From: Oopsacas minuta
Lineage: Eukaryota > Animalia > Porifera
Assembly: GCA_024704765.1 (NCBI GenBank)
Contig: JAKMXF010000111.1
Span: 1,070,619-1,134,618, forward strand
Length of the DNA stretch: 64,000 bases
Direction of reading: 5' to 3'
The notes beneath the pieces were generated by a model. That model searched no databases and was not told the origin of the DNA. It saw only the letters and a program-made list of their open reading frames with translations. Position numbers and translations under genes: made by a program. This document shows, piece by piece, positions 11,421 to 61,563 of this stretch; position 1 is the stretch's first letter; each line of letters opens with the position of its first letter.

Positions 11421-11544
11421 TTTAACCAAATTGATTAAGAATTACTAACGTTTTGTTACGTTATGCTTATTGTGGTTATACTACAATAATCAATATTATC
11501 CAAACGCGATTAATCTATAATTCTATATAATAATAATAATTAAA

Positions 11545-34119: not shown

Positions 34120-37100
34120 TTAGTTTAAATGAAATCCTTTTTCTTTGGTAGCAGCCATGAGACATAGATGCATCTCTTCTTCAGTTTTGTACTCCGGGAG
34201 CTTGAGGTAATGGAAACACGTGTTGACAGAAGGGAGGGTGCCTTCATAGGTAGTAGACTTCCTTACCACACACAGTCTGGGATGGAGGTTGGCAAGTCCG
34301 CCTGGAGGGAGAGAAGATGACCCAGTCACAAATTGCACAAATGCCTATATAAAATAAGCAAGTAATATGAAAACATATGAGCTTTATGCTATGGCTAAAT
34401 AAAAATATTTCGTTGATATGTCATTTAAAATGAATAATCACTATTCTTATCAGGTTTCTTTCTAAATGTATAGCAGCAAACAAATTGGATATGCAAATTT
34501 AGAACATTTCTATTTACGACCTAGTAATGGCATCTGTGTTAATGTCAGTTGTCTGTAAATACGTAATTAGTTCATATGCGAAGCTTCTTCGGTTCAAAAC
34601 ACTTCACTAAACGATTTCAAAGTTATGCCCTTTTACAAATATGTAGGTGTCACTCAACTCAAATAAAATCATGATTAGATTTAATAGAATTACTTTTGAA
34701 CAGAACTAATAGTACAGTAGAACTCGGATAAGACGTACCCTCTCGGGAAAACTATAATTACTACGTACTAACCGAGTTATTTCTTATGTGAATATTCTCC
34801 CTATATACAATTAGTAAAAGAATAGATAAACTGTTTTGGAGAAAAGTAAGTATTAACTAACTTCCACTGTAAAAACGATTGAATTAGGCTGAAAGAACAG
34901 CCAATATTGGAGGGTAGATAATTTTATTTGTTGTATTTAAGAGTATTTATTCGTAGCAACATATTACAAATCACCCAGCCCCATGATTATCGTCACTAAA
35001 TGGGTTGCTACAAAATAAGACTCTTTAATGCATTAAGAATTTTAGAGTGCATAATTGTATATATTTCATTCAAATTAACCTGAGTGACTAGCTATTTCGA
35101 ATTTCTTCCAAACCCCATTAAAGTTTTAGCTTTTTTTAATCTTTTTACTCAATTTCAAAGTACTAATGGCTTCACGTATCATGAGTATTGATTAGATGTC
35201 GATCTAGCGTTGCTTAATGCTTATATCATCTAAACGAACATATTTCCAAATATTCGTTGGACATGATTACGAATAATGATTTCAGTCCTAGAAATAATAA
35301 TACAAAATATCTAGAGCGGTTGGTGTCAATAGGTTCATAGCAAATACAGTCAGACTCGGATGAGATGAATCGAACCCATTGGGGTAATATAAATCAGTAC
35401 GTATTATTCGAGAGTACGTATTATTCGAGAGTACGTCTTATTCGGATAGATATTGTATAGAAATGAATAGGAAAATATTTTTTGGGAAGAAAGAAAAATA
35501 AGTATTAACCGAGACGTCTCATCCGAGTTCTACTGTCAGCAAAACAATGGTATCGTACTGCTTTCGGGTATTCAAATATTTTAAAATATATTCAAATATT
35601 TAAAATTTTGTATTCATCAATCAAAGTTAAGAAACTCAAAATCAAAGCCTCGAAGAACGATTAGTAATAAAAGCTTTTCATCAAAGACTCTTTAAGAGAA
35701 TTTGATTTTCAATTGAATCTGTTGTTGTGCTATTTTTAAGTGTTAGAGGTTAGAGATATAAGCTATATTACATACAGCTACACTTCACGTTCACATCACA
35801 ATGCCTTTGATAAACAGTATTTCCGCAAACGATAATGGATCAAAGAAATTTTCTGCAGAAAGAAAAGTGTAGTATTATGCCACAATATAAAGGGACAACT
35901 TACTTTCTTTTCTGATGGTGTGAAATTTGTAGCAACCTCAGTAAACATCAAATATGCTGTGCTGAAATAAAAAGAAAAGATATCTAAATATTCAACAGCT
36001 AATGTCGTTTAACTATCCATTTTCCAAGGAGTTAATTTTTATTATAAAGACATAGCTCCCTAGTAGCAAAGTTCGTGTGCAAAAATATGACTTGCTGCTA
36101 GGCGAACTGCACTAAAAAAAATATATATATACACATATAGAGATTGAAGAAGCTAGTCTCAGAGATGACTTATGGCCTGGCTCAGAAAATGCAAGCATTG
36201 CAAGATCATTGACACTTATAATCCCCATGGATTCACGACGTATTGCCACACTTTTGGATTTTCGAAAATTTACATACTTTATTGTTATATTAGGTGGTTG
36301 AATTGGAATCCAAGTACTACCAAATTGTCTGACGCCATAAGTTTCACCAAATATTTTATTTTAAGGGAATTATTACGCCATCAATATTCTACAAAAAAAT
36401 AGCAAATTTCGAAATCTAGTAGCGCGAAAAATTACAAAAGTTACCTCATCTTGTCATAACCATTTTTGGCTTCTGTAAAGTTGAGTAGATCTTCTCTAGT
36501 CCAGTTTGGAACTTGTTCTCCACAAGCTACTAATCTGAGCTCTTCAGGTTGGAAGCAACTGAGTGTGTTCATTGGAAATACAGTATTGAACCCAGCTACA
36601 AATACAATAAACACTCGTTAATTCGAACACGGTTATTACGAAACTCCGATGATACGTAAACTATTCAGTCCATTTCAATGCCTTTACAGTACCAATTGCG
36701 ACCGTCATTTTGTGTACGAACACCAATTGACAGTCGTAAGTATAAATTGAAGTTCCATGGCATTCAAGCACACAAAATATATGCCAAATCGCTGCCGCAG
36801 TAAAATTCTATATTTTCGTAGCATATCGAGTGTCAGTGTGTGTATTTATTATGCGCTATAACTGCTCAACAACCTGGATTGCACATTGAAAGTGGGAAAT
36901 ATTATTCAACTAAACTCAGCAAGTATAACATTCGATTATTGCCGAAAGTGAGATGTTAGATCATTAAATTAATTGATTTGAGGATAATTTGATTCAGCGT
37001 ATTTCAAAATATCAACGGTAAAAACTCATTTCTTTTGGAATGATAAAGCGATTTAATAGCTATTCTTTTGACAGTTATGCAATTCCTTAAAAATATATAT

Positions 37101-40100: not shown

Positions 40101-43100
40101 CGTTGACATATTTATCATAGTGGTAAACAACGAATAAAACACAAATCAGAAAAGAGCTCAAAATTATTCAAAGATGAAAAAGAGCAATCATTGGAGTAAT
40201 TACTAAGAGCTACATAAAATATTCTTGGAAGAGTACCAATAACTGTTAGGAACATGCTGGACTATATTAGTACAGAGTAAATTTGTATTTTTGATGAGCA
40301 GTTTTAACCTTATCATCTTTTGTCATACTTTTTTTAATTGAAACACATTTTTGTTGTGAAAAGGCTTCATTCTCCGTCAATTTGGGGCTTAGTGAGCCAT
40401 ACAACCCTCGGATTGAATCAGTACACAAAGATTAGTGCTGGAAAAAACTGACTTGTGACATGAGATAGTATTGTTGAAGTTGGAACTAGCGCATTTTATG
40501 ATTACTAAATAGTGAAATTTGGTTTGCGTCTTTGAAAAATTGAGAGAAAATTCTCTTTACGACAATACCCACGATATTGAGTAACATACTTCACTAGTGA
40601 CTTCCCAGTGATCATTTAACCACATGTTTTGCTCCACCTTCTGTAGTTCTGTAGCGACAAGAGAATAGAACTCTAGAGAAGGTCCTAAACCTGTTCCTTC
40701 CTCATTCTCGTATTGAATCTAAATATACATATCACCCAGTAAGTCACCATTTGGTTAATGCAAAATATATTTACCTCTAAAATAGCCTTCCTCGAGCAGG
40801 TTGCTTCCATTACCCTCTTAGCTTGTTGTAAAGTCTGTAAAATTTAGATTAATTCAATCCGTAATTAACTGAATTAAAACTTAGTAGGATTCATCGTTAA
40901 GTCGTCGCACATTCTTACAATTGTAGAACAGTTCTAATAAATCCTCCTCACCAATTACTTACCAGGTTTCTAGATACAGTGACAATATCAACTTTCAGCC
41001 TCCCTAGTCTAAACTCATGATGCTCCTCAGATCTGGAGGTGGTCACATTCAAGTTAGATCTGTTACGATCCAATTCATCTTTGTGCCTCTCCTGGAGCCA
41101 AACAATAGACCTGTGGGATATCAAGTAAATATACCTGCCCCATGGAGTAAAGTAATTCTCTTCAAAAGTTAAGATGAAATAAAATAATATTACACAAAGG
41201 ATATAGTTCATAGGAAATGATTATGCTGGTAACCATCATATACTATCAGGTCCCTTCCTTCATACCACACAAATTAGTATTGGTATGTGGATTCAGAATT
41301 AATACCTACATTTAAATGTTAGTTATTGAGCACTGAGATATGTGTAGTGCTCATATTTACGAGAGTATATTGTTTGTTGGTTGAAAGCACACAGCATTTT
41401 GACTCTATTTGTAAAGTTGTACACTTATGTTTCTGTAAATTGGTATGAAACATAGTACAAAACTGTGACAGTAATTTAACTCAATTTATTTTACTTATAA
41501 GTTCACAAACCTTGTCGGTCCGAATGATTTACTCTTGAAATATTTCATTCGACATTCAAAAGGAATAACAAATGAATAATTACACAACACTTGACTAATC
41601 CATTCAGGCAAAGCGTCAGATGTTAGTGAGAGTGGATCCTAATTAATACAATGTAATCGATAGAGTAGGATGAATACACACAGGTTTGAAGTACACACGG
41701 ATATAAAAACTGACCTTTATTTGCATTAATATCTTGTTAGTGACCTTTTTACTATGATACTCTTCTTGAGTAACATGATTTGTAGCGTCTGAATAATGAT
41801 TAATTGTAAATTACACAATATGAATTGTATGGAGGTTGCAAATTGTGTTACCTTCACTATTGTCCTGAGAAGATAAGAATCTTATTTGTGACAATAGCTT
41901 AAGGACTTGGAAGAAAGTCTTACTATTATCCTGTTGGTTAGCAATAGAGTTATGCTGTCTATTCCTACTCAGTAAGGCTGGCTGACATTCCTATGGGAAA
42001 AGTAATGAAATGGAATTGGATATTAGTAAAGTTATTAATTTAGTTATTTTAGTACCGAGACTGAGCAGTGAATAATCAATTAAATAAATATAGTATGATA
42101 TATGTACCATCACTTCGGTTCATAAGGTTCTTCCATTAATATTATCAAGACAGCCATGAAATTCAATAAATATACAAGTATGGATAATAGTAAACATCTG
42201 CTTACATTAGTTTCATCCTCATGAAGTTTGTAGATAAGTCTATGTGATAAATAAGAGTATTCAAAATAAATATTCACTCTACACACACAAAGACCCTTAT
42301 ATAATACATTTGTGAATTAAATATAGTTTTGAAAACAAAAGGCATTTGTTCATATACAACTAAAACTGATAATCATATATAGCAGCAAGCACACCCTCTA
42401 CAACATTATCGGGTATTACCTCCCCACTAAGCTCTATACTAGGCTTAGCACAGGGAGGAATGTTATCCCATCTAAGGGTTATTACATCACTCTCAATCTC
42501 ATTTCGTGAAGGAGTTAAATGGATTGGTATAACATCTAAAAAGCGGAAGAATTCAGAAAGCAATGCTGTGTCTTCAACTTGTGCGATAGCATTTAAATAT
42601 CTCTCCAGCTTCCGTTGTCTAACTTCAATCACATGTTTAATATTTTTAGCCATTTTCTTTGGTGGAAACTTCGGATGAGGTTTTATAACTTTTTTCAATA
42701 TTTTCCTCAATTTGTAAAATTCTCGATATCTCTTCTCTACGATATGTTTTTGTGTACCATTGGTTACTTCAATACAATACACAGTATAGCTATTCCCAGA
42801 TGAAGGTTCTATGTTTCTGTGTTTTGGGATATGTATATAAAAATCTGCATCTTCTACTCCATTAGCCATTTCAAATAATTAATTACAGCAATATCAGTCT
42901 GTTATATTGTTCAGGTGGTATGCTTATGGTATAATATGATTACTGTAAGATTAGTTTTATTGCCCTCACAGGTAACTTTAGAACTAGCTTCAACCATAAA
43001 CATAAATATTGTCTTGGCAGCATAAATACATTCATTTCCGATTTGAGTTGTGTCCCAGTATACTATTATTTGCTTTGCTCACAAGTTACAAATTAATTAA

Positions 43101-46100
43101 TTGGCTTTATTTTGTCTGGAATTAGTGAGTAATAAAGAAAATGGGATTAATGAAGCTGTTTATTGACACACAAGAATACCATTTCACCTATGAGTTTCCA
43201 TTACAAATTTTCTCAACTCATATTAAAACTGGGACATAAATATGGCAATAATAAGAGCCGAAAAGTAGTGGTATGTCGCCAATCAGAACATTTCATAGAT
43301 ATGAAGCTTATCTAGCTAGACATTCCCAGTATTAATTATTTATCCTAAAAATGCATTTAAGTCAATTATCTAATATAATTTTTGTTGATCAAAAATAACG
43401 AAAAGTTTAAAAACTTACTCGTAGGTTGCATCCCAAGGTTTAGCAAATTTCTTCAAGTCACTACACATGAACGCTTTATTCAGATAATAGAAAAGAGATT
43501 TACTCGGATCGTCTAGAGGAACAATCAGCTCGTCTTTCTAAAAGTAATAACCAATAATAATAACATTAAAATGATTATAAATTTGATTAGTCACAAAACG
43601 GAAATATCAACAAACTTTTTCGGTCTTAATCTTGGTTAATTTAAGAGAAAGTGCAAGTCGACCAGTAATAGATTTTACTTCGCTCCCTTCAAGTTGTTTT
43701 GGTTTGGGATCTTCTAGAAATCAAAATAGGATTGTAAAGACCATAAGAAAGTTAATCGTATCGGTAAATCCAACAATCACAATTAGTTTACAATCTTGTA
43801 GAAATATTCAAATTATAATTATTATGAATATTGAAACGTCTAATAATCTATAATTAATATAATGTATCAACATTTGTTGAAGTTTACAATATTAATGGGC
43901 GGAACCAGCAGGCACCAGGACGTGTTAACTTCACGGAAGACAAATTTAAATGAGTTAATACTGCGATTTTCGACAGGATTAGCACCAATTTTACCATTCT
44001 AATGGCGTCTACTCGCTTTATTACGACCGATTGCGGTTGATTCCAGTAGTAACAGGATATTTTTTTGCTCGGATACAAAAATATTTACTGCTACCTCACA
44101 TGTGTAACTACGTCAAAAAATAATAGTGACCTAAACCTGATAAATTTTTGTGTTTCGTATGTATTAGTGTCGTGAGATCATCCTTAGAGACTAACCAATC
44201 TGGTAATCATTCTATTATCACATCGTGTTATCAATATTAACCTGGGTTGGGTAGAGTGAGAGGCTGCATAACAGGAATGTTATATTGTCCAGGTCTAGGA
44301 TCGTACGGGGGAAGGAGATCACTATATTCTCCTCTCAATTCTATTCCCTGAGGGAACTCAGGAATAGATTGTGTTCCTTCTGTAGATGCATCAATCTACG
44401 GAAATGTAAATAAATAACTGAATGATAAACAGATATATATTCCAACCTCTAAATCATCTTCAGCATTTTGAGAAATATCAAAAGTAAGCAAACTTGCCTA
44501 AAAACAAATAAATAATTGCAACTGACTCCAATAAATTGAGTTATTGTTATTTGATCGAATAAATATTAGTTGAGAATACAAGCGCATAAAGGGAATTCTT
44601 GAAAGAAAGAGTCCAGATGTTCTAAGCTACCCCACAACTGACAATACCAGCTGTTATTATGATAAGGAAAATACATTATAACTAATTAATATAATAAATT
44701 GTGTAGTGACATAGATAAGTGACAAATGCCAAGAGATTTTGGAAACTACACAAGTCAAATTACACAAAAAAGCCATATTTGACGCATTCATAAACAATTT
44801 ATTCTTTGGCTAAGGATTTCCCCCAACTTAAATTTTAGAAGGAAAACTAACTTGATCACAAAGGACAGAATTGACATCCATAGTCATCACATCCTCATCA
44901 GGTTCAGGAGGTTTAAGTAAGTTCTCTAGGTAGAGATCGTATTTACCTCCAGCACCCATGCGGTAAGAATTTGTATTACCATTGTCCCATTTAACTTCTA
45001 TCCAACCTACAGAAAAATAACCTGATAAACCTACGTACTCAACGAATAACATTAACATTCTATAGCAATGATTTGAACTCAGACCACATACGACTTGTAG
45101 ACAGCTATTTTAATTATACTGAAATATATGGATGGGCGTAGTTATTGAAATCTAATCACATTATACTAATATTGTAAAAATTTATCACCAGCTATTCAGT
45201 GCAATCAGATATTCACAAATACACTGCGTAAGCATATGACATCAAAAAAATGTAAGCAATCTAACTAAACAGTAAGAATAAGTATGTAGAAATAAATATG
45301 ATGTCATAAATATAAAAAATCCCCTCAATTATACCATCAGAGCTTAAATCTCCAGTTACTGTCCCTGAATCAGATAATTCTTCTTCCCAGTTGAAGTCAA
45401 GCCCCTTTCTCACCTTACTTCCTTGTTTCAACTGAGGTATAATCTAAATAACAAGTTTTATTACACAGAACTTTGGTATTATTATATTAAATAATAATAA
45501 TAATTACAATATTTCATCCCCCAAAATGGTAAGATAAATAAAGCATGAAAAGTCCCAAAAATATTGCAGATCGTTATTACATTATTACCAATTGTTGGAT
45601 GAGCTGTCGTTTTTTGTTCAGGACCTGTTCATGTTGATATGCTAAAGTAATAAACTTTAATACAAAGCTAAGATAGAGGAAATTACATGTAATCAATGAA
45701 ATTATTATAATATTATAAATTATAGATATGATTAATGCTCACTCTTTGGCTTGCCAGCAACTCCTGTTAACATGCCGTATAACTCAATACCGGATATACA
45801 AATGTAAAAATATTTCCCACTTGCATCAGGTCCAGTTATCTTTATCCGAAAGAACCTCCAACCTTCTGTTTCGTCCTCAGGTGCCTTCACGGGCCATGAA
45901 CAAGTAGAACTAGAATACTTTCAATTAGAAGAAAGAATGGCTAGGGCATTACAAATTCATAACACGTAACTAATATATGTGACTTAATGCAAGTGGTCAA
46001 TCAGTAATCAAATCAAAGAGGGAGTATTAGTATCACACAAACCCTGGGTGGACGAGAGAACTGTCGTTTTCATGTTTTGATAGAAGCTGCCATTTTCTAC

Positions 46101-49100
46101 CATTCTTTGAACCTTCAAATCTCCAATTACGTAATCCTGAACTTGAAATGATGAACACAATAATAATCACAATCAAGTTAATATATTAAATACAATCAGT
46201 TTACTTCTCAAATCCTGCAGCATGTCTAATGGAGTACATAGTCGGTATGAACCATAATCCGAGATCTAGCATCAACCAGGAGTCTCTATAAGCAAAAACA
46301 CAAACAGGCTACAATCAAGGTTTGGTATCTTGTTCGAATGGGTAAAATCAGACAGAGCAAACAACAATTTACTGCAAATAAAGTACTTTTTGTTCCCGAT
46401 GTATGATTTGTGAGGAGTGGTGTCTCTCGACAGGAAATCTGATAAGAAGCCAGAAGCAGGGTACAGTCCATCACTGCTAGTTATATTCACTAACCGGATG
46501 TCATGTGGATTAGAATACTCACAGGTCCTATTAGATTGTGTATACAAATGTAAACTAGCAAATTTAAATAATTCTCCAAATAATATTAACAGAAATGTAC
46601 TACGTATAAGCGCGTTTGAACTAATTCGGTATATTTAGAGTTGCTAAACATAATAGAATTTTATCATAATGTTAAGCAGGTGGAGAGTGGAATAACAACT
46701 GATTATTAGTCCTAATCTCATTCGTACAAATAATCACCACAGCCATTTCTACAATTACGTATACAAAATGCAGAATTGTACTGGCGACTAGCACATTGAG
46801 GGTAACCCAAAACAATATCTTTCTCATGAAAAAGATGTCAACAAGCTATGACTAAGTTCTATAAAACCCTTACTCGAAGGCCATATAAAATAATATACTT
46901 GTTTATCATCCCCGCCCGCCCCATTTAATTTCCCTCCTCGGCAAATTTTTAATTATAAAACATCTTTATTTAATACTTATAATCGCAGATGAGCATCTTC
47001 GAAACAAGCTAATTATTTAACACTAGCGCCCTTCGCTTGCTAGGTCGCTGAGCAGTGTGGCTAATCATGTGATATTTCGAAAATCCAAAAAGGTGGCAAT
47101 GGCATCATAATTTCGTCAGGTGTGAATTTCGTCCAAGACTCAAACCTGTCCGAGTCAGGCCCAAATACTCCTCCCTGTATGGCAAAAATCAGCCCTGGGG
47201 TGTGCACTAAATTTTTATTATTATTATTTAAATTGTACAATAATTCAGATTATAGAGAGGAAGTGAATATTAGTTTTCCCCATATACAGTGAAAGCTTAA
47301 TACGAACACCAACGGACCGTACGGTTAGAATTTATTCGCTTTTCCGAAGTTCATAAACCGGAGTAATATCCATTGAAGTACGGTTGTAGGGACCTGATTA
47401 TGTCGAATATTGTTCGTCTTATCAGAAATTCGTATTAACGAGATAGTTTAAATAAATTAGTAAAATTACGCTAAGCAAAAAGGTAAAATAAAATGCCGCC
47501 CCCCGCCCCTATTTTGCAGAAAAAAATGGATGAGAAACAAGTAATATATCTTGCATGGCCTATATAGATGGCTATTACGAGTTACGTCATGACAGTAAGA
47601 AAGTGTTCCAATGTAATTTGAATCGAATAATTGAATTAATGCTAGCATGGTAGTTACCGTTTATGCAGCTGTGTTGATAAGATTAATATGTAAACTGATA
47701 TGATTAGAAAAGTTAGAGATGGTACCGTCAACAATACACATAATTATATAGTGATCATGTGTTTAGCACACAAAAGAATACACCTTGTAGATATTTTGAT
47801 TATATTGGTCTATGTACATTTTAGGAAATTTTTAATTAATATTATGTAATGAGAGTGTTGTTGCATGTTTACACATTAGCATTAAATTCTCTTATAATAA
47901 ATATAATTTTCACTCAAATAATTGCTCGTATACATTCTATATGTTAATAAATTACCAAGCGTTTGTTCCCATCCAATAGAAAATTCCTTGTTTATCAAAA
48001 TCGCCTGTGAAGTTGAACTGTATTGGGTGTGATTTGGCTATCTTAATGAAGTTCAGGTCATTTCTTTCGTAGTCATACCACATGTTCGTTAACTAAATTG
48101 ACAAAAATCAAATCGTACATAACTTCAAAGCTGAGAAAGTGAAATAAACCTTAGTATAGAGATACTTTTCAAGTTGCCTAACTAGAATAAGAGGCTCTGC
48201 ACGAAAATGTTTTCCAGTGTAATCCCTTAGAACTGTGTCGCAAGGTTCGCGACGTAATTCGATATGAAACTTCCTCTGAAGATTCTAAAGAAAAAGAATT
48301 AATTCTGAGTAATAAAACCATCAAACCTTAAATGGAGCATTCCTATACTCTGCTACGTTAGCTACCAATAGTTATTTGCTCCTACGACTAAGAAAACAGG
48401 GAAGCGGGAAAAGTAATAGAATAAAGAGATTATTGAAATTATGCAAGATATGAGTTAAAATTAGACTCAGTGTAGTGCTTCGCTACTAATTAGTATAATT
48501 ATTGTATTGGAAATGTTTTAATGCATTGTGGCTGGCTATCGCAGCTAAAAATAATCTCTTAGGTCCTCAATTAAACTAAAATTTGTTTCTGGATATGGTA
48601 TAGGGTTGTGCACCAGGGATAATTAATAATATTACATATACTGATGTACGAGAAGTGTGAAGAAATGTTTCGGTTGCAAAAGTGTAGAAATTTGGTCGAT
48701 AAATAAATAAGTGTAATTTTATGTGTTTATTATTTAGATTAAAATACATATTTTAATTAAACCAAAACTATCACAACACAAGAATTTATCACTAATGGAC
48801 CCAATAAATGGATGCTTCAATTAATAAATCAAAACGTACTTACACCAATAGAGAAGGTCTGTTTATGGTCGAATAAATAAACAGGTAGTTTTTCAATAGT
48901 TTCTAGGACTGATACAAGCTTCTGAACAAGGAGATTTAGATTTTTGCTACAAACATTAGTAAATTATTAATTACATAGCGTTTGCCATCTGATAGATACA
49001 TACGTATATGAAATGTTAGCAAAATACAACTGAGAAATGTATGTAGTTCTAAATTCGCATCACTGTTAATTATTGCAATGCCAAAAGGTAACATTCCAAA

Positions 49101-52100
49101 TAAATTTTAGGAGAATCAAATATTTAATTGGATGAAAATAATCAGCTGTAGATAACAGCTCTATATATGGCCATGATAGAAATATTTTGAGAACTTTATA
49201 CTCAGATATTGTAAATAGATTTAAGTTGAAATGCTAGCTGCAAAACCTTATAATAATTTAAATAATCAGAAATGACTGTTGTAGAGAGAAGCCGTTATGC
49301 TTAGAGGATTGATACACGCTAAACCAACGTTAAAACCTAATAACAGGAGCTTAATTGACTCAGGGTTCAAGGTAAGAATATTCCAATTCCATTCCAAAGA
49401 AGATTTTGATTTCGAAAAAGAAGGATTCTACCGCGAATATTCAAAGAAGAGAAAAAAGTCTGAAAAGCTTCCTCCACTAGATCCATTCAAACTAGATAAA
49501 TTTGAAAGAAAAGAAAGTGTAAAGGAAAATTTTGATGGTAGTATCCCTCTTAATTTGATAGAATCCATGAATTCATTTTCAATATTACCAAATCAAGTGA
49601 TGAGAAGTGCTCTTGGTAACAATGAACAGAGAGTTACAGATATATCTATGATAGTAAAAGAATTCTCAAATAAGATTTCATCATTGGATAACATTGAACT
49701 CTTTAGGGTGTTACTACTGAGGTTTAGTGTTGTAAATATAGATGTAGATAAGCTGAAATCAACAATACAAATATTAATAGAAAATGGTATAAATCCAGCT
49801 AGAATGTTAGAGCTACAACCTACAGTGATTTGCATAGATGTCAATATGTTAGCACAGAATCTTAAATCACTGCTACGAATAATAGAACCGAATTTTGAAG
49901 AAATTAAATTCAATCGAACCATCTTTCAGGAGCTGAATAAACTCTCTAGCTTTGCTAACAGATGTAACACTGAGTGTAAAGGAGCAGAGCTAGTAGAGAG
50001 ATTGTATCAATCAGGGAGAAAGAGGAATCTAAGTAACTTCCGTATTTATAAGCGAGTATTTGAGGCGATAAAGCTGACATCTCTCTCAGATAAATCCACA
50101 GATTCAGATGTCTATAATCTATGTTGTGTAGTGTATAAGAGACTGTTTAGAGCAGAAATAACTCAATTGTGCTCAGAACATTTCAAAGAGATAGCCCTTG
50201 GATTTACTGATGAGTTTCAAACAGATCTCAACTCATTGAGAGGAATAGGATTACAGAATAATAGTTGGGTGGGTAAATTCCTGAAGACCATATCTGTTTC
50301 TAAGATATTACTCAGAGATATTTCTATAGTACATCAGCTAGGCCCTAAGTTAACTCTACTAGAAGGATATGGGATTGATGTCAACAAGCTAAACCTGTTT
50401 CAAAAATGTCCAAAGCTTTTAAATTCCTCAGAGAGTGACATAACCAGATCAATGGCAATACTCAAATCTTCTCCATTTTACTGCAACAGAACTAATATAT
50501 CAAGAGTGCTAGCTAGAGATCCCAGTATATTCACAATACCTGAAGTACTTGAGAGCACGAGAAAAGAACTCGAACTAATACCTTTATTAAAACATAGACA
50601 AATAGATTGGCATGTCCTTATTAAAAGATGTCCCAATGTATTAACAATCAAGAACTATTCTAGGATATTTGATGTACAAGAAAATCATGGATTCTCAAAA
50701 GATGAAATTATTACTTCGTTGGAATACTATCCTTCAATTATTAAGTTTATCGAGAATAAAATAGATGAGTTAGATAGAAACAGTTCTCCTCTTAAGCCAC
50801 ATTTAACTAAGATAGCTCCATCAACAAAGATACGATTGATTAAGGAAAGAATCGAACAAGAAACACTCTACCGCTACTCTGGCTACACCAAAGCAGAACC
50901 TATAAGTGGAGAAGTTACAGATATGGCGGGAGATGGAAAAGATGGAAAAGATATTTCTAAAGAAACAGATAGAGATTTTGAGTATTTTGATGATGATAAT
51001 GATGATAATTAAATATATTGTATATACCTTTTATCTTTCAGATTAGGAGAGATACCAAAAGCAAATTTAAATATATTTATTCTGTCTCTAACCCGATTTG
51101 CATTAGAGTTCCCAGTCTATAAAATAACATTAATAATATCGACCTAAAATTCGTACAAATTTTAGTTATGATAGCTTACCGGCTCTACACATGCTAGTAG
51201 TGCATCAACAATTTTACTGAAGTGTAGTTCATAAGCTGTTAAACTATTGTCACTTGAAATTATAGTCACTAGATTGTTCAATAATTCATCTACTTCTTTT
51301 AAATGATTTTCAGAATCTGGTAACTAATAATAGATGCAAATAGATAAATAATATTAATTACAAAATTAGAGTATACTAGGATTACTCACACTGGAATCCT
51401 CGTGCGTCTCACAAGCTGTTTTTAACTTCAATGCAAGAGCTTGTAATTTTAGAGTTGATTTTCTTGCGATACTAGTTGAATCGAAGAAATGGACTTCTAT
51501 TATTTTCTCAGCAATAGCAGCAATCTATAGCAATCTCACAATATTATACGTATAATTAACACAGAAATTACAATTATCATATGAATGTGATAATTGAGGG
51601 TGGAATATACGAAAGTAACAAAACAAATCTATAAAATGTATTCGTATATCAGTGAGCGTTTAATCCAATTACACACTTTGAAATATTGCTTATAATAATA
51701 ATTAATTAATTAACATCACCAAAAAATGGCTACCTTGTCACTACCATCACTCTTCGGTTTAGATTTTCTATTCCATGTTATGGTTAATAAATCTAACAAT
51801 ATAAACCTTATGTAGAAATAAAAGTGATAAGTTAATCAAACATACCTTTTATTGCGAATTTATTGATGCAATATATATTGTAAGCAATTTGTTAGAATTT
51901 GAAATATGAGAAAATAACTGACAAATATCGTAATACGATTCATCTCTTTTTTCCATATGTTATTATTCCAAAAAGTAAGTCAACAAAAACAGTTATAAAA
52001 TTCTAAAAAAAATGCTGCCTTCCCTAATCATGAGGAATTACTATTACATAAGGAAATAACATACCTAGCATAGGGGCTCCAGTGAAGTTCAAAGAATTAT

Positions 52101-55100
52101 CGTTATAGTTAAATCCAAAGCCATCTGCTACTTGCTCTCTCAGCACCAGAAGTTGCTGGATAATAAAGAAAGTACTTAGGTAGAATTAATCTATTAGCGT
52201 GTATAGACAGTGTAATATTAACAGATAATTATACTGCATTACAATACCATATAAATTGCTGAAGCGGAGTACGTAGTAAATGATGTATAGTATTCTAGGT
52301 GTTATAACAGCCAACCTTAAGACGTTGGGAATTTGAAATATTGAGTACGCCCTCTTCTGGACAGCTCAACACCCATCTACCCATTAATAAATCAGGAGAA
52401 TCGGGGCATGAGAGGAGAGGGAGACTGCCTGCTGTAAAATTTATCGTTTCGCGACATAGCTTCATTGTATGTAAGAAACCTAAACAAATATAATTAGAAT
52501 TGTTCTAGCAATTAATGTAGGGGCTTCTTTCAGTTGTTGTGACGTAATCGGTTGGCTTAGTATAAGGAATGTTTTAATGTGGCCTCTAATGTGCAGTAAG
52601 AATTCATTAATCGCATTTTACTAAGAAATTGGTTAAAAATTCATCGAGAATACTTGTCACATAATAATTCTATTGTCTAAAATTGGTATTTCTAGAATTT
52701 AAGCTAGTTTTACGTCAATCATTAACTGACTTGGAGTTCTCTTATCAGGTTGTATTGTACCAGAAGAATACATTAGACGAGGTTTGCTATCTATCGCGAA
52801 TTTAAACCATCCATTACTCATGAAATTTAGCTCCAGTGCACAGAACTGATTCCAAATGTAAACTGTATCATCTCTAAATGCCATGAAACACCAGCTGTTC
52901 CAGTGGTAAGCTTTCCTAGGTTCTATCTTAGTTGCATCGGGAACAACTATCGGTTGCTAGAGAAGGAAAGGAATGTAGTATTCGATTCTTAATGGAACTA
53001 TTAAAATTAATAGTATCTGTGACACTTAGTTAGACTGATAGACAATAAAATATAGATACAGTAATTCTTGTGTAATTTAAATCGTTAAAAAGTTTTGCCG
53101 GCTTTTCACAAGGTTCGCTGTAATTAAAATAATTAAATTCGCTAAATTTACCATCCAAGAATTATGGAGATTAGAATAATCCAGTAATATATCAATAAAG
53201 ATAACTTTTATCTTTTAGCTCAAATAAGAAGTGGAATGACATTATTAATTTGATAACAAGCGAGATAGTTATCAGTTAGTTACAGTGAAATTCCCTAATA
53301 AATCCATAAACCTAATTATGCCAGTCTGCCATATGTGATATTCTCATTACATGAAGCCAGCCTTTTTTTTACAAATATTTTACAGTTTGACGAAACAAAA
53401 AGATAAAGATACATAAATTTATGGGTGTTATTGCAAGTACTAATTGAATTCAAACGACTTCAATTAATCAAAATAGCAATCAAAATGAACTCGTATACCT
53501 CAGGTGGTATCTTCACCATCTCTTTGATCATATCTACAATGCCTAAGCTAGTGAAGCTGTCCTTAAATATTGCTGGGCACTTTGTAATAGAGAACTGTAT
53601 CATTTGTAGTGAAATCAAATGTGATTCTATATATTCCTAGAAATGTAATTAAATATATTATATTACAAGTCATATACTTATGAATCATTACCTCTGGAGC
53701 TAGAGAGATAGCTAGTAGATCAGAGAGTATGCTGGGGAGACAGCCGCCACAACTTAGTTCGATACAAGATAGATCATGTAGCAGATCATCTGGTGGTGTT
53801 TTTAATAATCTCCGTATCAAATCAAGAGTCATTTTCCTAGAAAATCCTTTAAAAACAGCTGATATCATGTTAACATGATTGTAACATACTTTACAGTTCT
53901 AGAGAGAGTTGAGTGGTATGCCTGACACAAGATAGGAACATATGTGATCACAAATTGAGCTGCTAGGGTAGGATCACCTGAGAATACTTGTTTGGTTGCC
54001 TCGAGACCAGCAGAATTAGATCTAGGCTTTGTTTCTGGAGATGATGGAGCTTGGACTTGTTCAGTGTTGGAATCAGATTCTTCAGAAGATCCTCCATCCA
54101 TATAATCCTCTGTAGAAATAGACAGCAATTATATACGAGTATACTGTATGGTGACGTATTCAGGGGAGGGAACAAGAGGTACATGCCTCTTAAATATTTA
54201 AGACACAGTGAAGTTCGTTTATTCGCAACTCGTATTTTGCACGAATTCCAGTTGCTAATAATCTACACTTGGGAATTGAAAATAGATTTCTAATATGCGA
54301 ATATTGCTATTAACCGAGTTCCCAATAAGCTAACTCGATTGTATTTACAAATTATAACGTAACCTTCGTACAACCAAATATTCACGTAGTATATCAAAAT
54401 ATTAGTTAACAGCACTAGTCAGTATTAATGAAGTACTAATGAAGAGCAGGTGGTAGATAAAATTACTACAAGGGATTAATAGCTATGAATTTGAAGAAGG
54501 AAATAGTATTATGCCGCGTTACTTAAGCAAGAATTATTTCAAGGAGCATGCTATAGAGATAGAAGAGCTCCTGGACAGATGTCTCCTCGTGTCACCAGGA
54601 GCACATTTCACAGAGAACTGTCAGTTGTCAGCCACACACGAGGAGTTATACAAACCTTGGGAAGTGTCAAACTATAAGCACTTATTCGAGAACAGTTCCT
54701 TGTTAGAAGATAGAAGCATTGAAGAAGAACTTAGAGCATTATCTACTGCAGTCCCTCAGGTAGAGAGTATATGGGATTGTGATAAGGATCAATGGGAGGA
54801 GTTCTATGAGATAGATATGAATGAGACAGGTAGTTACTCTCTATATGAAGTGTTCTACCCTGATAACACATACTTGTATAATGAGTGGATATCTGGATTG
54901 AATGAGGATAATTACGTAACCGTTTCCAATTTCTTTGAGGACATGGAGAGTTGTAACTTCCTATCACTAGAACCTGACAAATATTATCCATCAGTTGACA
55001 AGCTGGTGGGCAGATGGAAGAGCAAACCAGTTACTGATCCTCTACTAGGAGATAATGGAGAGCCTCTATTAACTGAAGAAGTATTCTTGCGAGAAGACAG

Positions 55101-58100
55101 AGTACTAGATATAGAGTTAGGAGCTTGTGACGTGAACGAGGAACAGTTCTGTAGAGAACTGATAGGAGATGATGAAGTAGTAACTATTAATGGCATTATG
55201 TCATTATTTGAAGAACCCAAGGTACCTCCTATAGAAAACTATGGTGTAGAGTATATAGAGGAAGCATTGCAGTTTAGCTCTGATGTAAGTCCATTAAGTA
55301 TAGTGACATATGATAAGTTGATAGAAGACATGTCATTACTCAACGCTTGTAAAGTTAGTCAGTTAATCACTCAGGTAGAGAATCAATTAGATATCTCTTT
55401 TACAGAAGAAGTAGCAGAATGTAGTATAGAAGTTCCTATAGAACAGCACCAGGATACAGCATGGACGCTAGAAAGCCCTCTGATAGACCCGCAAGAACCG
55501 AGTCTCCTATCACAGCTGACGAATGAAAACACCCTCCTCCCCCTCACACCATTTACAACTCATCAATTCCTCTCTCCTACAGCTATAAGGAAATATGAGC
55601 TTGCCCTGAGGACTTGTAACCAAATGCCAGACGAGATTAGTAACTTAATGTTGGTGGAGCCTAGCATTAGTGTAAACACATTCTACCCAGCAGTACAGTA
55701 TGTAATAGAGCAGTTGGAGATGAAATTAGATGGAAATGTGAGTGCATTGGATATGGAACTTAGGTGGGATCCTCTCACACATTTTTATGATCAAATCGAA
55801 CTGGTTAAGCAGAGGTTATTCACACAATGTAGTCTGGAAATAAAGGGCTTCTCTGCTGAAATGTGTGCTGTTAGTTTATTCATTCTTAAAGAAAACCAGA
55901 TTGAGGATCTCACCAGATACGACACACTCCTGCCTGGATTAGATAGAGAGAGTTTAGCTAGTTCATACTACTCACAGAATAAACCTGCAATGAGATTACA
56001 CTCTATTGATGATGACATATTTGTTAAACAGAAAGTACAGCTCCATGATCATACAGCTAGATCAGAAATTAGATTAGGGATTCATGAAAATAGTAATTCT
56101 CAAAATTACAGTCTTCCTCTAGCTAGAGATAACTCTAAACAACAAATCAGTGATACATTCAATCACATTGATTCAATCGATTCATTCCTTCTCCTCAGAC
56201 AAAAGAGACAATCTCCACAATCCTCAACGACTGTAAGTCCTGAACACACACAACACAACCACACACAACCAAAACGTATATGTTTGATGACGTCACCAAA
56301 ACAGGCTACAAAGCTATCTGTCCTAGATGTACCACTCAACAGACTCTACAGAGAAGCGATTAATCTACTGACCGCTGCTGGAGAACCTCTATTAAGACAA
56401 GTTCAGGAGTACGGATATCTTCAAGATTCTAGTTACACAAGTCTGGTAAAGTCACCAGATATATTACAGTTTCTGTTGAGGGAACACAAACATCAATGGT
56501 TGGAAAATGACATGCCTATGGGAAATACAGTATGGTACAAACTTAGAGTAATTTCTCAGCTGTTCTGTCTCGTCAGCTGTGGGTACGCACTAGTGGGTAC
56601 AAGCCTGAGCGCAGCCATTGATGTACTTTTTGGTTCTGTCAACAAATACAAGGTACTCGTACAAAATTCCCTTGTGACCACTGGGAATTCATTGATTGGG
56701 ATGCAGGAGAGTGTACATAGTAGTTCATTTCATCCCAAAATTATTCAAACAATTTCCATTCTCTTAGAAAAAGAAAAAACATTGACAAAATGTTTTAGCG
56801 TTTGTATCATAGTATTCGACATAGCGTGTACTTTTAACCTCGCAGGTGAGATGTTTGAAATATTAAAGTCACAAGTTGGAAATCTATGCATTAACCTAAT
56901 TAAGGCTCCAAGCAATGAAACCTATAACAACTACCACGAGTTACTAAAAAGAGCATTTGACGCTAGCCATTGTTTGCTGTGTGAAAGTTCTACTCTAAAC
57001 TATGATAATTTTCCTTGGGAAAGAATTTCGCTAATCATATTATATAATTTGAAAGACACTTCAAAGAGTGTTTCTTTAGTAAATGAGAAGACACATGAAG
57101 ACTGTAGGATTCTGGTATTGAGGACGAGTATGGAGTCAGACTTGATAAATTTACAAAAACAGATCCCTGATAATCCACAGAAATCTAGTTTTATTATCTG
57201 CTCAACAGAAGTGTGTGAGGAACAAGGCTTGTTAGAGATAATTGAATCTAAATGTAACCTACTGGTAGTGGAGAGAGATTATGTAGGGATGGGATTAGAT
57301 AGATATTCAGCAGATATTATAGTCAATGAGAATACTGGGATATTACTCGTTAACCTGGCTAGTCTACACCAGGAGGGAGGTTTACACAAACTAACTGATA
57401 AACTGCAAAATGTGAAACTAGCCTATAACACCTGCTATGTGCTTGCGTTTACGAAATCTACTGAGGAGTATATGAAGGGAGATGGACCTAAAATGCTAGC
57501 TGCATTAAACTATACAATTTCAAAGTTACAATATGATAACTTCAAAATTGAGCTCAAGGGTAGCACTGAGATTCAAGGGATTGCAGATATAATCCGTACA
57601 ATCGTGAGTAATCATTCTACAAGTAAATGTGAAGATACAGAAATTGAAATCGAGGCCAGTGAGCAAGAAAAGTGGCTGCTAAGCCTGAGATGTGTAAATG
57701 CGTGTGCTGCACTTAATTTGCTCTCAAAATATACACTGACAGAACTTATTAGGGTAGATTTAAGTGAACTCAGTCATAAACATCCGCGGATACCAACTCA
57801 ATGCTTAGAAAGTCTCCATCAGATTTGCAGTCAGAATTACGACCAATGGAAAAACGTGGGTGACAGGATGTACCAGGAAAATAATGATTGTAACAGCAAT
57901 AATACAAATAACAATTTACTCAATAGTTCGCCAAATCATTATGCAACTAGTAAGCTAGGAAGCACTGATAATGCTCCAAATTTTGTCCATTCTACGAACG
58001 ATATGATAGTAAGAACTAATATTAATCAATTACTTTCTGATCCAGTGCAACAAGAAGATTATTACAACACAAAACCTAACAAACCATACAGCACCGGTAG

Positions 58101-61100
58101 CATAATACGTAATACGTGGGTGAAGGTGGGTGATTACAGACCACAAAACAACAACAATAACAGAATAAATAAACCTATACAGACTGGCAGGAACAACCTA
58201 TCAGAAGGATTATTAGAATTCCAAAAGCAGCAAACAGATACCAGAGTTACTATCCCCATAGAAACAACATATACAAATACTTCAGAGTATATTCAATGGT
58301 TAGATGAAACTATGGATACAAACCATAGAGAACTCAGTTGCAAACAGGTGCCAGGAGTATCACAAACTAAGTTAATCTTCAAAGAAAATTGATATATCTA
58401 CCAAATTTGTTAAATCACGAGATTCACATAATTATTATTATCATGTGATAAATATTAGCCTAGATACATACCAGCATTTTCTAGTATTTCAACTAGCATC
58501 TTCCCTTCCTTACTTCCATCTCCTGCCAGTAAGAGAGCTTTCTCTAGAGGAGTACTACCATCCTCAGCTCTCTGTTCTGGATTAGCTCCATACTTCAGTA
58601 ACACCTAATTAATCCATATAATTAACCATATATATGGGTCATATCTGCATGGATGTTTCCATAAGCAAATTTCCCGAGATCAACTCTCCGCCATTCCGAA
58701 ATTTGACGGTCCCTTGGTTACGCATTAATTAGTAATGATATTCTACTGTAATCAAACACACCACTACCTTAACTAGATTTGGTTTCTTTGTCATTACAGA
58801 TAAATGTAGAGAAGAAAACTTCTGACCTAGACAGGGATCAGCTCCTTGATTAAGAAGGTACCTTACCTATAATAAAATCAATGTAATGCAATACTCTGGA
58901 ATATATAAAATGATATATTAGTACCTGTTTCTCAGATCCCACAGCTGTTGCCCAATTTAATAATGACTGCCCTATATCATTAATATAGTTTACGTCAAAT
59001 CCTAAACGGAAAAATTAAAATATAATCCAATCTGTAAATGATTTAATTAATTAATTCGGATAGTATTGACTGACACAAAAGGTGTTTATATTGCATCTAC
59101 AAATTTTTAATCTGTTATTTAACAATATTAGACATATCAGAGCAGAAATTACTGTGATCTGTGTACGTATATTGTCATTAATGTACCTTTCTCTACAGCA
59201 GTAACTAGAGCAGCATAATCTTGGTTCTTGAGAACATCTACGATATGTCTTATTGGGGAGTCAGGATTTTCTCCTCTCGTAAACATATCAGATAATATAG
59301 CAGTAGAAGAGAAGTGAGATTTAGCTAAAGCTTCTCTCCCTTCTAAAGCTAATATCTCCAGCACTTCTATCAGTCTCAAACCCTCCACTACATATCTATA
59401 AGGTTTAATAGTAACTTCAGTAGTATACGTAGCTGCTACAGTAATGGTTTTTTGTTACCTTTCATCAGCTTGTAATGTTATCTTGAGCTTCTCTGGTAAC
59501 TTGGAACCCAGCAATGTCTGAGTAGAATGACATAAAATACATTATTAAAGCAAATATACTATGGGACAATTTATTGAGTGATTGAGACAATATCGCGGAT
59601 ATAATTCACGTTAAATGCGTTTGGTAAACGTGAATTTAGATATTCCACACAATCTTCAGCTTACTAGCACATATGCGCTTATGGCCTTTCCAGAAATTTT
59701 GAAATTTAAATGATTATAAAAATTGTGATAATTTATATTAAACATAATGTGTATGTATACCTCTGTTATAGACGGAGATCCTCTACACAACAGTCCAAAT
59801 ACTGGCAATATAGTTACTACACATTCTCCTACTACAACACCTGAATATGATACTGAGCCAGGGGAAGCATGGACCTTAGATTTTGTGATTTTTGTGTTCT
59901 GATCGAATTTTTCCAGCAACCTCTCCAAGAGACCATGTTCTACGAGGGGGGTGAGGTCAGCTTTTTTAGACACAAACTTTTTAATAAGAATTGTGAAGCA
60001 TTTCAAACAACCATCGAATATCTACAAAATGTCTATAATTATTAGCAGTTAGTTCTAGACAACACTTGGGGATTATTAATAGTGTAGACACTATGACAGC
60101 AATAAATACCTAGAGTTAATAATATCACAACATTATCATTAATAATAGATAAGGACTGATATGAAAGAATAGATGAATAAGAAGTCTGATAAATTACAAG
60201 ATCATGGTTCGTATTGTGTCGTAACTAGGTAGAATGTTTGGAGCGTAAAGAGGTACAGTGACTGAAACGTCCCGAGATGTTTAGAAATGTTCTTACATGC
60301 TTAGTTAAACAGGCTTCACATTTTCCTAGAATAATTTCATATCAGTCGGAATAGTCTAATTGACAAGTAGCATACCAATTGGCTATACCAATTGGCTATA
60401 CCATGTATTGTATTGTTAGCAATAAATACAATAACAGAGTGATGAGTAGATTTTACTTTGGTAGTATAAATGTGTGGTGTAATTTGCTATTTTATTGATG
60501 GTTTAACTTTATCATATATGATGATAACAAACTATGGATAACTGATATTACTGCTTGGTTATTAGATTAATAAGTGAACTTTAATTAATACTCCCTGTAT
60601 TCACCCCAAGACTTATGAGAGAATATCAAATAGAGCTTTATGGCTTTACTAACAAACAGCCTAGGTTCTAGATCCTCCCCTATTATATCCTAGCAAATTT
60701 GAGGATATTTTCCACGCAGAACATTCATGAGAAAACATGAGCACACGTTAACTAATATCCTATAATAGTCCCTGATAAATGCTACTATTAATTGAAAGTA
60801 ATCTGATTATGTAAGTATATGTGAGAATGATCTCAAATACCTTCTTATCATCACTCTCCATTAGTTGAGTAATGCGTAGACATACAAATGGTAAGTGTTG
60901 ATAATCAGGATCTACTCTAGGACACAGATGTATAGCAGCTGATATAGAGCTATAGAGAGCATCCTTATGCAGAGCTGTACCTAATGTAGTTAGTTTTAGG
61001 ACACAAGGAAGGCCTCCTGCATCAAATACAGATTTGCTATCTCCTCTCGATAGTAAGTCTAGAATCTAGAATATAGAATAATATAGCGGATGTACGAATA

Positions 61101-61563
61101 TATGTTAATTATTGAGAAATTACTTTAACACACTGCTCTCCCAGATCCAAACTCTCTTTAACAAAGGTGTTAGCAAATTCAATTATGTTAATAAACTTGG
61201 TTATGGTACCACTGACAGAGGTAATCTTCTTTCCACAGTCTAGAGATATATCTAAGAAGAAGTATAGAGCACGTGTAGCAGGCTCTAGAATAACCTCAGG
61301 AGCTGTATCGTCAAGGAATATGTTACAGAGAACAGGAATGAATGTCTTGGGTGGAAAACTAGAAAGTAAAAGAGTAAAGAGCTTCAAACCATGCTTGTGG
61401 AATTTCTCAAAGCAACTCACTTCTCCAAACATTTGTCAATATTATCAAACATTGACAGCATCTGACATAACTGTTCTAACCCAGTGAGTTGTAGCTCACG
61501 CTCGCTATCTTGTCCAAAGACATTGATCCACTCAATTAGGATTCCTGTGTCTATTCCAGACAT
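34120..61563 (-). CDS. HECTD1: HECT E3 ubiquitin ligase HECTD1, roughly 40 exons over 27.4 kb
   Basis: Exons in the expected order: [30 protein letters not shown], ankyrin [20 protein letters not shown]-like [26 protein letters not shown]2 [39 protein letters not shown], and HECT end [15 protein letters not shown]...KEKGFHLN*. A few internal junctions are approximate. Confidence 0.93.
34715..35535. mobile_element. Non-autonomous pogo/Tigger-like element in the last HECTD1 intron
   Basis: TIRs CAGTAGAACTCGGAT(A/G)AGACGT, TA on the left, TC on the right. Contains an internal second TIR-like copy near 35347 and 17-bp tandem repeats near 35397-35445. Confidence 0.7.
42360..42869 (-). CDS. SNX24: Sorting nexin 24/22-like PX-domain protein, intronless, nested on the same strand in a HECTD1 intron
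   Basis: [39 protein letters not shown] and C-terminal [12 protein letters not shown]. Confidence 0.8.
   Translation of the reverse strand: MANGVEDADFYIHIPKHRNIEPSSGNSYTVYCIEVTNGTQKHIVEKRYREFYKLRKILKKVIKPHPKFPPKKMAKNIKHVIEVRQRKLERYLNAIAQVEDTALLSEFFRFLDVIPIHLTPSRNEIESDVITLRWDNIPPCAKPSIELSGEVIPDNVVEGVLAAIYDYQF
46878..47561. mobile_element. Complete 684-bp non-autonomous TIR element in a HECTD1 intron
   Basis: Left end AGGCCATATAAAATAATATACTTGTTTATCATCC and right end GGATGAGAAACAAGTAATATATCTTGCATGGCCT. Its halves recur at 9200-9512 and 11545-11898. Confidence 0.75.
49297..51012 (+). CDS. mTERF-repeat-like mitochondrial protein, intronless, nested antisense in HECTD1
   Basis: Basic presequence-like N-terminus; repeats of L..xG....i..CP.lL/DP.IF/YP.II type; acidic tail. 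Confidence 0.6.
   Translation: MLRGLIHAKPTLKPNNRSLIDSGFKVRIFQFHSKEDFDFEKEGFYREYSKKRKKSEKLPPLDPFKLDKFERKESVKENFDGSIPLNLIESMNSFSILPNQVMRSALGNNEQRVTDISMIVKEFSNKISSLDNIELFRVLLLRFSVVNIDVDKLKSTIQILIENGINPARMLELQPTVICIDVNMLAQNLKSLLRIIEPNFEEIKFNRTIFQELNKLSSFANRCNTECKGAELVERLYQSGRKRNLSNFRIYKRVFEAIKLTSLSDKSTDSDVYNLCCVVYKRLFRAEITQLCSEHFKEIALGFTDEFQTDLNSLRGIGLQNNSWVGKFLKTISVSKILLRDISIVHQLGPKLTLLEGYGIDVNKLNLFQKCPKLLNSSESDITRSMAILKSSPFYCNRTNISRVLARDPSIFTIPEVLESTRKELELIPLLKHRQIDWHVLIKRCPNVLTIKNYSRIFDVQENHGFSKDEIITSLEYYPSIIKFIENKIDELDRNSSPLKPHLTKIAPSTKIRLIKERIEQETLYRYSGYTKAEPISGEVTDMAGDGKDGKDISKETDRDFEYFDDDNDDN
54511..58392 (+). CDS. SHOC1: SHOC1 (C9orf84/Zip2-like) meiotic XPF-domain protein, 1293 aa, intronless, nested antisense in HECTD1
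   Basis: C-terminal [17 protein letters not shown]...[11 protein letters not shown]...[15 protein letters not shown]...[18 protein letters not shown]...[10 protein letters not shown] matches the recalled ERCC4-like and HhH2 region of SHOC1. Confidence 0.8.
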   Translation: MPRYLSKNYFKEHAIEIEELLDRCLLVSPGAHFTENCQLSATHEELYKPWEVSNYKHLFENSSLLEDRSIEEELRALSTAVPQVESIWDCDKDQWEEFYEIDMNETGSYSLYEVFYPDNTYLYNEWISGLNEDNYVTVSNFFEDMESCNFLSLEPDKYYPSVDKLVGRWKSKPVTDPLLGDNGEPLLTEEVFLREDRVLDIELGACDVNEEQFCRELIGDDEVVTINGIMSLFEEPKVPPIENYGVEYIEEALQFSSDVSPLSIVTYDKLIEDMSLLNACKVSQLITQVENQLDISFTEEVAECSIEVPIEQHQDTAWTLESPLIDPQEPSLLSQLTNENTLLPLTPFTTHQFLSPTAIRKYELALRTCNQMPDEISNLMLVEPSISVNTFYPAVQYVIEQLEMKLDGNVSALDMELRWDPLTHFYDQIELVKQRLFTQCSLEIKGFSAEMCAVSLFILKENQIEDLTRYDTLLPGLDRESLASSYYSQNKPAMRLHSIDDDIFVKQKVQLHDHTARSEIRLGIHENSNSQNYSLPLARDNSKQQISDTFNHIDSIDSFLLLRQKRQSPQSSTTVSPEHTQHNHTQPKRICLMTSPKQATKLSVLDVPLNRLYREAINLLTAAGEPLLRQVQEYGYLQDSSYTSLVKSPDILQFLLREHKHQWLENDMPMGNTVWYKLRVISQLFCLVSCGYALVGTSLSAAIDVLFGSVNKYKVLVQNSLVTTGNSLIGMQESVHSSSFHPKIIQTISILLEKEKTLTKCFSVCIIVFDIACTFNLAGEMFEILKSQVGNLCINLIKAPSNETYNNYHELLKRAFDASHCLLCESSTLNYDNFPWERISLIILYNLKDTSKSVSLVNEKTHEDCRILVLRTSMESDLINLQKQIPDNPQKSSFIICSTEVCEEQGLLEIIESKCNLLVVERDYVGMGLDRYSADIIVNENTGILLVNLASLHQEGGLHKLTDKLQNVKLAYNTCYVLAFTKSTEEYMKGDGPKMLAALNYTISKLQYDNFKIELKGSTEIQGIADIIRTIVSNHSTSKCEDTEIEIEASEQEKWLLSLRCVNACAALNLLSKYTLTELIRVDLSELSHKHPRIPTQCLESLHQICSQNYDQWKNVGDRMYQENNDCNSNNTNNNLLNSSPNHYATSKLGSTDNAPNFVHSTNDMIVRTNINQLLSDPVQQEDYYNTKPNKPYSTGSIIRNTWVKVGDYRPQNNNNNRINKPIQTGRNNLSEGLLEFQKQQTDTRVTIPIETTYTNTSEYIQWLDETMDTNHRELSCKQVPGVSQTKLIFKEN

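Follow-up and report, generated by a model that had tools for sequence, protein, structure and literature searches.

Nested genes in glass sponges

Genes lodged within the introns of other genes are familiar from bilaterians, for instance in introns of human NF1 or F8 and, in many cases, in Drosophila. Among glass sponges, which provide the closest described systems, Francis et al. (2023, PMC10282587) counted 2432 nested genes (12.4%) in Aphrocallistes vastus, many of them conserved, and documented extensive microsynteny between that species and Oopsacas minuta. The same study found 9872 of 16340 O. minuta transcripts (approximately 60%) to be single-exon, and reported that glassin, a single-exon gene, is nested in both species; the v1 annotation of O. 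minuta held only 83 nested genes, a figure which they attributed to the annotation method. Introns of O. minuta average 341 bp in length and number 1.59 per gene. The window analysed here is the whole of a 64,000-nucleotide (nt) stretch of O. minuta DNA (GenBank assembly GCA_024704765.1, contig JAKMXF010000111.1, positions 1,070,619 to 1,134,618 of the forward strand; GC content 30-39%), in which an orthologue of the ubiquitin ligase gene HECTD1 holds, in three of its introns, three complete genes that each consist of one open reading frame (ORF): a SHOC1/ZIP2 orthologue, an mTERF-domain gene and an SNX24-like sorting nexin gene. The locus is a real and new instance of an organisation that is already published for glass sponges, and the arrangement is very probably ordinary, anciently fixed intronic gene nesting in a compact genome.

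The HECTD1 host gene

Exons of the host were sought by translating all stop-free minus-strand pieces between 33.5 and 62 kb and matching them to eight loci from six other assemblies (ERZ25072740, represented by two haplotigs, ERZ20067936, ERZ25766962, ERZ25072730, ERZ25069837, and ERZ23489137), the loci being retrieved via orthologues of the nested proteins. Some 46 conserved islands with sharp boundaries emerged between 61563 and 34123, 6659 nt in total, with protein identities typically of approximately 60-100% and a collinear order in every locus wherever it was covered. The host and two of its exons away from the nests are as follows.

34120..61563, minus strand: HECTD1 orthologue, coding span (start codon at 61563, stop codon at 34120-34122; about 46 conserved coding segments)
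61420-61563, minus strand: HECTD1 start exon (N-terminal), 100% identical in two relatives
44846-45010, minus strand: HECTD1 MIB/HERC2 exon, matching Pfam MIB_HERC2, with human HECTD1 as the top PDB matches

Homology searches were run exon by exon. Pfam searches with individual exons were mostly blank or weak, as with the ankyrin matches at 58.5-58.9 kb (Ank, E 0.04, single exons) and a Sad1/UNC (SUN) match at 45.7-45.9 kb (Sad1_UNC, E 0.28, single exon), and the N-terminal exon, a SUN-region exon, and exon 33 found no match by sequence in PDB. The MIB/HERC2 exon, by contrast with these, retrieved human HECTD1 from PDB (3dkm, E 5.5e-8; 2dk3, E 8.2e-8) ahead of MIB1 (E 3e-3). Positions 24-72, 162-211, and 234-305 of HECT (PF00632) were found in order at 39.4-39.7, 36.4-36.6, and 34.1-34.3 kb, the last exon scoring 75.7 bits to HECT. 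The MIB/HERC2 and HECT exons, and the tentative ankyrin and Sad1/UNC segments, follow the canonical domain order along the minus strand over a span of 27.4 kb. The host had been named HECTD1 in the preliminary description of this DNA, with its exons in canonical order, and the conserved islands together with the ordered MIB/HERC2 and HECT matches bear out that naming.

Introns that hold whole genes

The three nests, each given from the upstream host exon to the downstream one, comprise the following features.

58472..58604, minus strand: HECTD1 exon 9, putative ankyrin region, preceding the SHOC1-bearing intron (AG at 58606-58605, GT at 58471-58470; 91-98% identical in relatives)
54110..58471, minus strand: HECTD1 intron 9, 4362 nt, GT..AG, phase 1 (1+2), 89% filled by the SHOC1 ORF
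54511..58392, plus strand: SHOC1/ZIP2 orthologue, one ORF of 1293 codons, antisense to the host (profile search, hhalign, XPF-like fold)
53883..54109, minus strand: HECTD1 exon 10, following the SHOC1-bearing intron (AG at 54111-54110; 82-85% identical in relatives)
51028..51116, minus strand: HECTD1 exon 20, with 15 nt between its donor site and the mTERF stop codon; conserved in relatives
48947..51027, minus strand: HECTD1 intron 20, 2081 nt, GT..AG, phase 2 (2+1), 82% filled by the mTERF ORF
49297..51012, plus strand: mTERF-domain protein gene, one ORF of 571 codons, antisense to the host (PF02536)
48844..48946, minus strand: HECTD1 exon 21, following the mTERF-bearing intron (AG at 48948-48947; conserved in relatives)
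43419..43537, minus strand: HECTD1 exon 33, preceding the PX-bearing intron (AG at 43539-43538, GT at 43418-43417; conserved in relatives)
41959..43418, minus strand: HECTD1 intron 33, 1460 nt, GT..AG, phase 2 (2+1), 35% filled by the same-strand PX gene
42360..42869, minus strand: SNX24-like PX-only sorting nexin gene, one ORF of 169 codons on the host strand (PX, 49 bits; six orthologues)
41852..41958, minus strand: HECTD1 exon 34, following the PX-bearing intron (AG at 41960-41959, GT at 41851-41850; conserved)

Three whole genes had been placed inside HECTD1 introns by the preliminary description, and the ORFs lie at exactly the coordinates it gave: each falls wholly between two consecutive HECTD1 exons, with flanks that read as canonical GT..AG and are phase-compatible at all three junctions. 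The SHOC1 ATG is 401 nt from exon 10 and its stop codon 79 nt from exon 9, while the SNX24-like ORF is separated from the host exons by approximately 550 nt upstream and 400 nt downstream. Among the 45 gaps between the islands (median 136 nt), the guest-bearing introns rank first, second, and fifth by size; six gaps exceed 1.4 kb, three of them with genes, two with dispersed repeats, and one single-copy.

Whether the exon groups between the guests might be separate transcription units, rather than parts of one HECTD1 gene, deserves consideration given that the same-strand PX gene needs a terminator within the presumed intron. Such a split is nonetheless highly improbable, as all three junctions are GT..AG and phase-compatible, a conserved N-terminal start exon and a HECT C-terminus each occur just once, the exon order equals the domain order, the same collinear exon series recurs in related loci where covered, and the two HECTD1 exons tested are single-copy in the genome. 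An assembly chimera, which the preliminary description had named as an outcome that would undo its picture, is effectively refuted and of negligible probability, the exon and gene order being collinear in six independent assemblies (ERZ25072740 as two haplotigs).

Identity of the nested genes

The names under which the guests were first described hold for all three: SHOC1 by the agreement of a profile search, hhalign, and a Zip2-like XPF fold; mTERF-like by a Pfam match to PF02536 over threshold, repeated among its orthologues; and SNX24-like by its PX domain, with SNX24 as the best solved relative.

For SHOC1, no direct Pfam match to PF17825 (DUF5587) was obtained with the sponge protein of 1293 amino acids, which gave only a weak DUF7102 match (17.9 bits against a cutoff of 27), and membership of the family therefore rests on profile searches. 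Six single-ORF orthologues of approximately 1255-1314 amino acids were recovered from ENA assemblies by a word search. A profile of residues 590-1115, built from five sponges and run against 1.84 billion representatives, gave 65 matches. The top matches, from Lineus, Haliotis, Octopus, and Argopecten, are named by NCBI as “protein shortage in chiasmata 1 ortholog(-like)” (named SHOC1 proteins, E 2e-26 to 1e-23), and the six best non-self matches, these being the six scanned, carry PF17825 well over threshold. When the seven sponge proteins were aligned with hhalign to eight SHOC1 proteins of bilaterians, the result was a probability of 100% and an E value of 1.2e-49 over 1016 columns, starting from residue 1. 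With five sequences as input, AlphaFold gave an unusable model of residues 590-1115, with a predicted local distance difference test score (pLDDT) of 42, whereas residues 800-1115, modelled from a 26-row alignment, reached a pLDDT of 82; Foldseek placed the latter model closest to yeast Zip2:Spo16 (6bzf_F, E 2e-8), with FANCM-FAAP24 and XPF ranking next. The model and the Foldseek search thus reveal the C-terminal XPF-like domain with helix-hairpin-helix that marks SHOC1/ZIP2, and the 1293-codon ORF is SHOC1/ZIP2. In the alignment consensus, the last 20 or so residues of the C-terminus (58290-58389) share a short motif with the C-terminal ends of bilaterian SHOC1; the motif sits past the XPF-like domain, after a poorly conserved Asn-rich tail.

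The mTERF protein of the window scores 26.7 bits to PF02536 (cutoff 23.1), and four of its seven orthologues match the same Pfam family, the best with an E value of 2.7e-8. These orthologues are single ORFs and 38-56% identical, while PDB searches with the mTERF protein, alone or as a seq­uence profile of seven members, found nothing meaningful. Judged by its Pfam matches, the 571-codon ORF is a member of the mTERF family, the assignment being made at family level. ATTAAA, a variant of the poly(A) signal, overlaps the mTERF stop codon at 51008-51013, 15 nt from the antisense exon 20, and a similar spacing of approximately 15-40 nt separates the stop codon from exon 20 both in the window and in the majority of relatives (approximately 225 nt in the related locus L003). 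Outside the guest ORFs, alignment at the DNA level within the three introns was confined to some 200 nt upstream of the mTERF ATG (49097-49293), which is 71-72% identical in two relatives (L007 and L009); this stretch is a candidate promoter or 5' untranslated region.

The PX protein retrieved human SNX24 (4az9) as the top PDB match with 59 bits (E 5.5e-15), ahead of nischarin with 39 and SNX22 with 37 bits, and its six orthologues are 60-73% identical and 168-175 amino acids in length. The open frame comprises just 172 codons, with a stop directly upstream of the ATG, which rules it out as a coding exon internal to HECTD1. A “complete” Trinity ORF of 169 amino acids exists for the orthologue of one relative. 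The short Logan contig L004, which also contains a PX orthologue, is uninformative on transcription because it is collinear with genomic DNA and lacks poly(A). In the public protein collection that was queried, the exact proteins of 571 and 1293 amino acids are present (NCBI, UniRef) and the exact PX protein of 169 amino acids is absent; the public annotation probably lacks the same-strand guest or fuses it with another model. The 11.4-kb contig L010 (ena:ERZ26869290:ctg337121) bears inverted copies of the PX gene at 1450-1959 and 7284-7793, plus neighbouring ORFs, and these look like a palindromic artefact of long-read assembly.

Conservation and age of the nest

The preliminary description had called for the nesting to be compared in related genomes, and the arrangement proved common to the six other assemblies where covered: wherever the loci cover the guests, these occupy the same introns in the same orientations, and the nest is thus conserved between hexactinellid genomes. 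Pairwise Nei-Gojobori estimates of synonymous divergence (dS) range from approximately 1.2 to above 3 and are saturated, whereas the ratio of nonsynonymous to synonymous divergence (dN/dS) is approximately 0.13 or lower for PX, 0.23-0.27 for mTERF, and 0.14-0.19 for SHOC1. ORFs of 169-1293 codons in DNA of 33% GC, conserved as proteins, are far beyond chance expectation. By the measure of these ratios, the guests are functional genes under purifying selection. As dS exceeds 1 while the nesting is shared, the arrangement is ancient, and it has outlasted more than one substitution per synonymous site.

Such persistence invites the idea that the nesting is functional, with antisense or read-through transcription coupling the expression of the ligase to that of the meiotic, mitochondrial, and endosomal genes, a coupling of these genes having been raised in the preliminary description. 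Beyond the stability of the arrangement across dS above 1, the closeness of the mTERF stop codon to exon 20 in most related loci and the ATTAAA overlapping that stop codon could be taken in its favour. However, glass sponges have thousands of nested genes and extensive microsynteny, and with nesting so commonplace throughout their genomes the conservation of one nest can be understood without a special function; between genomes, the spacing on the SHOC1 side also ranges from approximately 65 to approximately 510 nt. No evidence supporting the coupling was found, and we consider it very unlikely.

Origin of the intronless guests

SHOC1 and SNX24 are multi-exon in vertebrates, and the guests were accordingly proposed in the preliminary description to be processed copies or intron-stripped genes that had colonised an intron-rich host, with multi-exon parents to be sought elsewhere. 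The guest coding sequences are indeed intronless, as are those of their orthologues, likewise single ORFs (a statement that applies to coding sequence only). Francis et al. (2023, PMC10282587) also consider that some single-exon genes of glass sponges could have arisen by retrotransposition. One amphioxus SHOC1 model is fused to a reverse-transcriptase domain, which is probably an annotation artefact and irrelevant here.

The remaining evidence runs against retrocopies whose multi-exon parents were lost later. A search of the 61-Mb genome found no extra or parental copy of any guest, each being present solely as the copy in the window, and the PX protein has distant paralogues only (E approximately 1e-4). 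No run of eight or more A residues occurs downstream of any guest ORF (within approximately 300-470 nt). The nesting is common to six other assemblies at dS above 1, and any insertion would accordingly be very old with its hallmarks erased; at this divergence, target-site duplications would not be recognisable. Moreover, with approximately 60% of the transcripts of the genome being single-exon, that state is common and intronlessness is not distinctive of the three guests. The notion of colonisation by retrocopies is thus not upheld for sole copies in an old and shared nest, where intronlessness is the default. Nothing supports a very old retroposition with loss of the parents as the origin, and this scenario is regarded as unlikely.

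Proposed organisation of the locus

Under ordinary nesting, HECTD1 would be transcribed on the minus strand over its 27.4 kb and would retain about 45 mostly tiny introns, three of the few long ones staying long because each contains a complete, selected, single-exon gene; a deletion bias would keep just such “occupied” introns long. Each guest would probably possess its own promoter, in the 350-550 nt between the neighbouring host exon and its ATG, and would have its own terminator. The SHOC1 and mTERF genes would be read antisense to HECTD1; as only 79 and 15 nt separate their respective stop codons from host exons, the 3' end of each must reach up to the adjacent exon or run into it. Being on the host strand, the SNX24-like gene must start and end within the intron despite read-through of the host.

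Three points weigh against this reading. The splicing of HECTD1 across the guests and the separate guest transcripts are predictions from genomic sequence. Neither AATAAA nor ATTAAA occurs after the SHOC1 or PX ORFs, in the case of PX before the next host exon. The gap of 1656 nt at 37763-39418 is single-copy and without recognisable content, so that occupancy does not account for every long intron. As the same-strand PX gene lacks a canonical poly(A) signal, it might be expressed from the HECTD1 primary transcript; a nest that goes beyond passive packing in this manner, with PX derived from that transcript or from an unusual intronic start and stop, and with regulated convergent transcription behind the conserved proximity of the mTERF 3' end to exon 20, is considered distinctly unlikely, if slightly less so than the coupling discussed above.

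Repeats and neighbouring genes

One gene-free intron of the host is enlarged by a dispersed repeat resembling a miniature inverted-repeat transposable element (MITE).

46877..47562, no strand assigned: MITE-like dispersed repeat of approximately 690 bp in the gene-free 1428-nt intron 23 (at least 40 copies, 81-94% identity, on many contigs)

Its first 35 or so bases have short matches on the reverse strand, which suggest terminal inverted repeats; an ORF of 59 codons at 47061-47240 falls within it, and a partial copy is found in the window at approximately 11544-11898. In HECTD1 intron 45 (34362-35496), a stretch of 1.1 kb shares 92% identity with a site on contig C301 and includes, at 34713-34871, an element of approximately 150 bp with at least 40 copies of 72-86% identity. 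Rfam and tRNA scans of 33-63 kb gave no matches, and no conserved plus-strand coding sequence was found beyond the two plus-strand guests.

C-terminal exons of a sedolisin (S53 peptidase) gene, at 62094-63087 on the minus strand, adjoin the HECTD1 start, and the orthologue of an NHL-repeat gene starts at approximately 63629 on the plus strand and runs past the end of the window. In relatives, the NHL gene lies between the HECTD1 5' exons and the sedolisin Pro-kuma_activ exon, and it may be a further guest, lodged within the sedolisin gene. At least 66 matches to the NHL family occur in the genome, and in-frame stops interrupt several of them.

Comparison with known nested genes

The chief value of the HECTD1 locus lies in its annotation and in the clean worked example that it provides; the general view of nested genes is unchanged by it. 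O. minuta is shown to possess SHOC1/ZIP2, a component of the meiotic crossover machinery, as a full-length orthologue that includes a Zip2-like XPF domain, and the 83 nested genes published for its v1 annotation probably fall far short of the true number, a suspicion that Francis et al. had already voiced (PMC10282587).

The likeness to the nested genes described in hexactinellids is close, in that a single-exon guest sits wholly within an intron of a multi-exon host, in an arrangement conserved among glass sponges, in a compact genome, and at a locus of the kind that automatic annotation handles poorly. It differs from them in having three guests in three introns of one host, one of them on the host strand, and the combination of HECTD1 with SHOC1, mTERF, and SNX24-like genes is absent from the text of PMC10282587. 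With retrogenes, the guests have in common their intronless coding sequence; unlike retrogenes, they are without a parent copy or a poly(A) remnant, and they are sole orthologues that are not lineage-specific. The classical nests of bilaterians likewise hold a guest within an intron of the host, the guest frequently being antisense and frequently poor in introns itself, but there the host introns extend over tens of kb, whereas SHOC1 and mTERF fill 82-89% of theirs and end 15-79 nt from a host exon.

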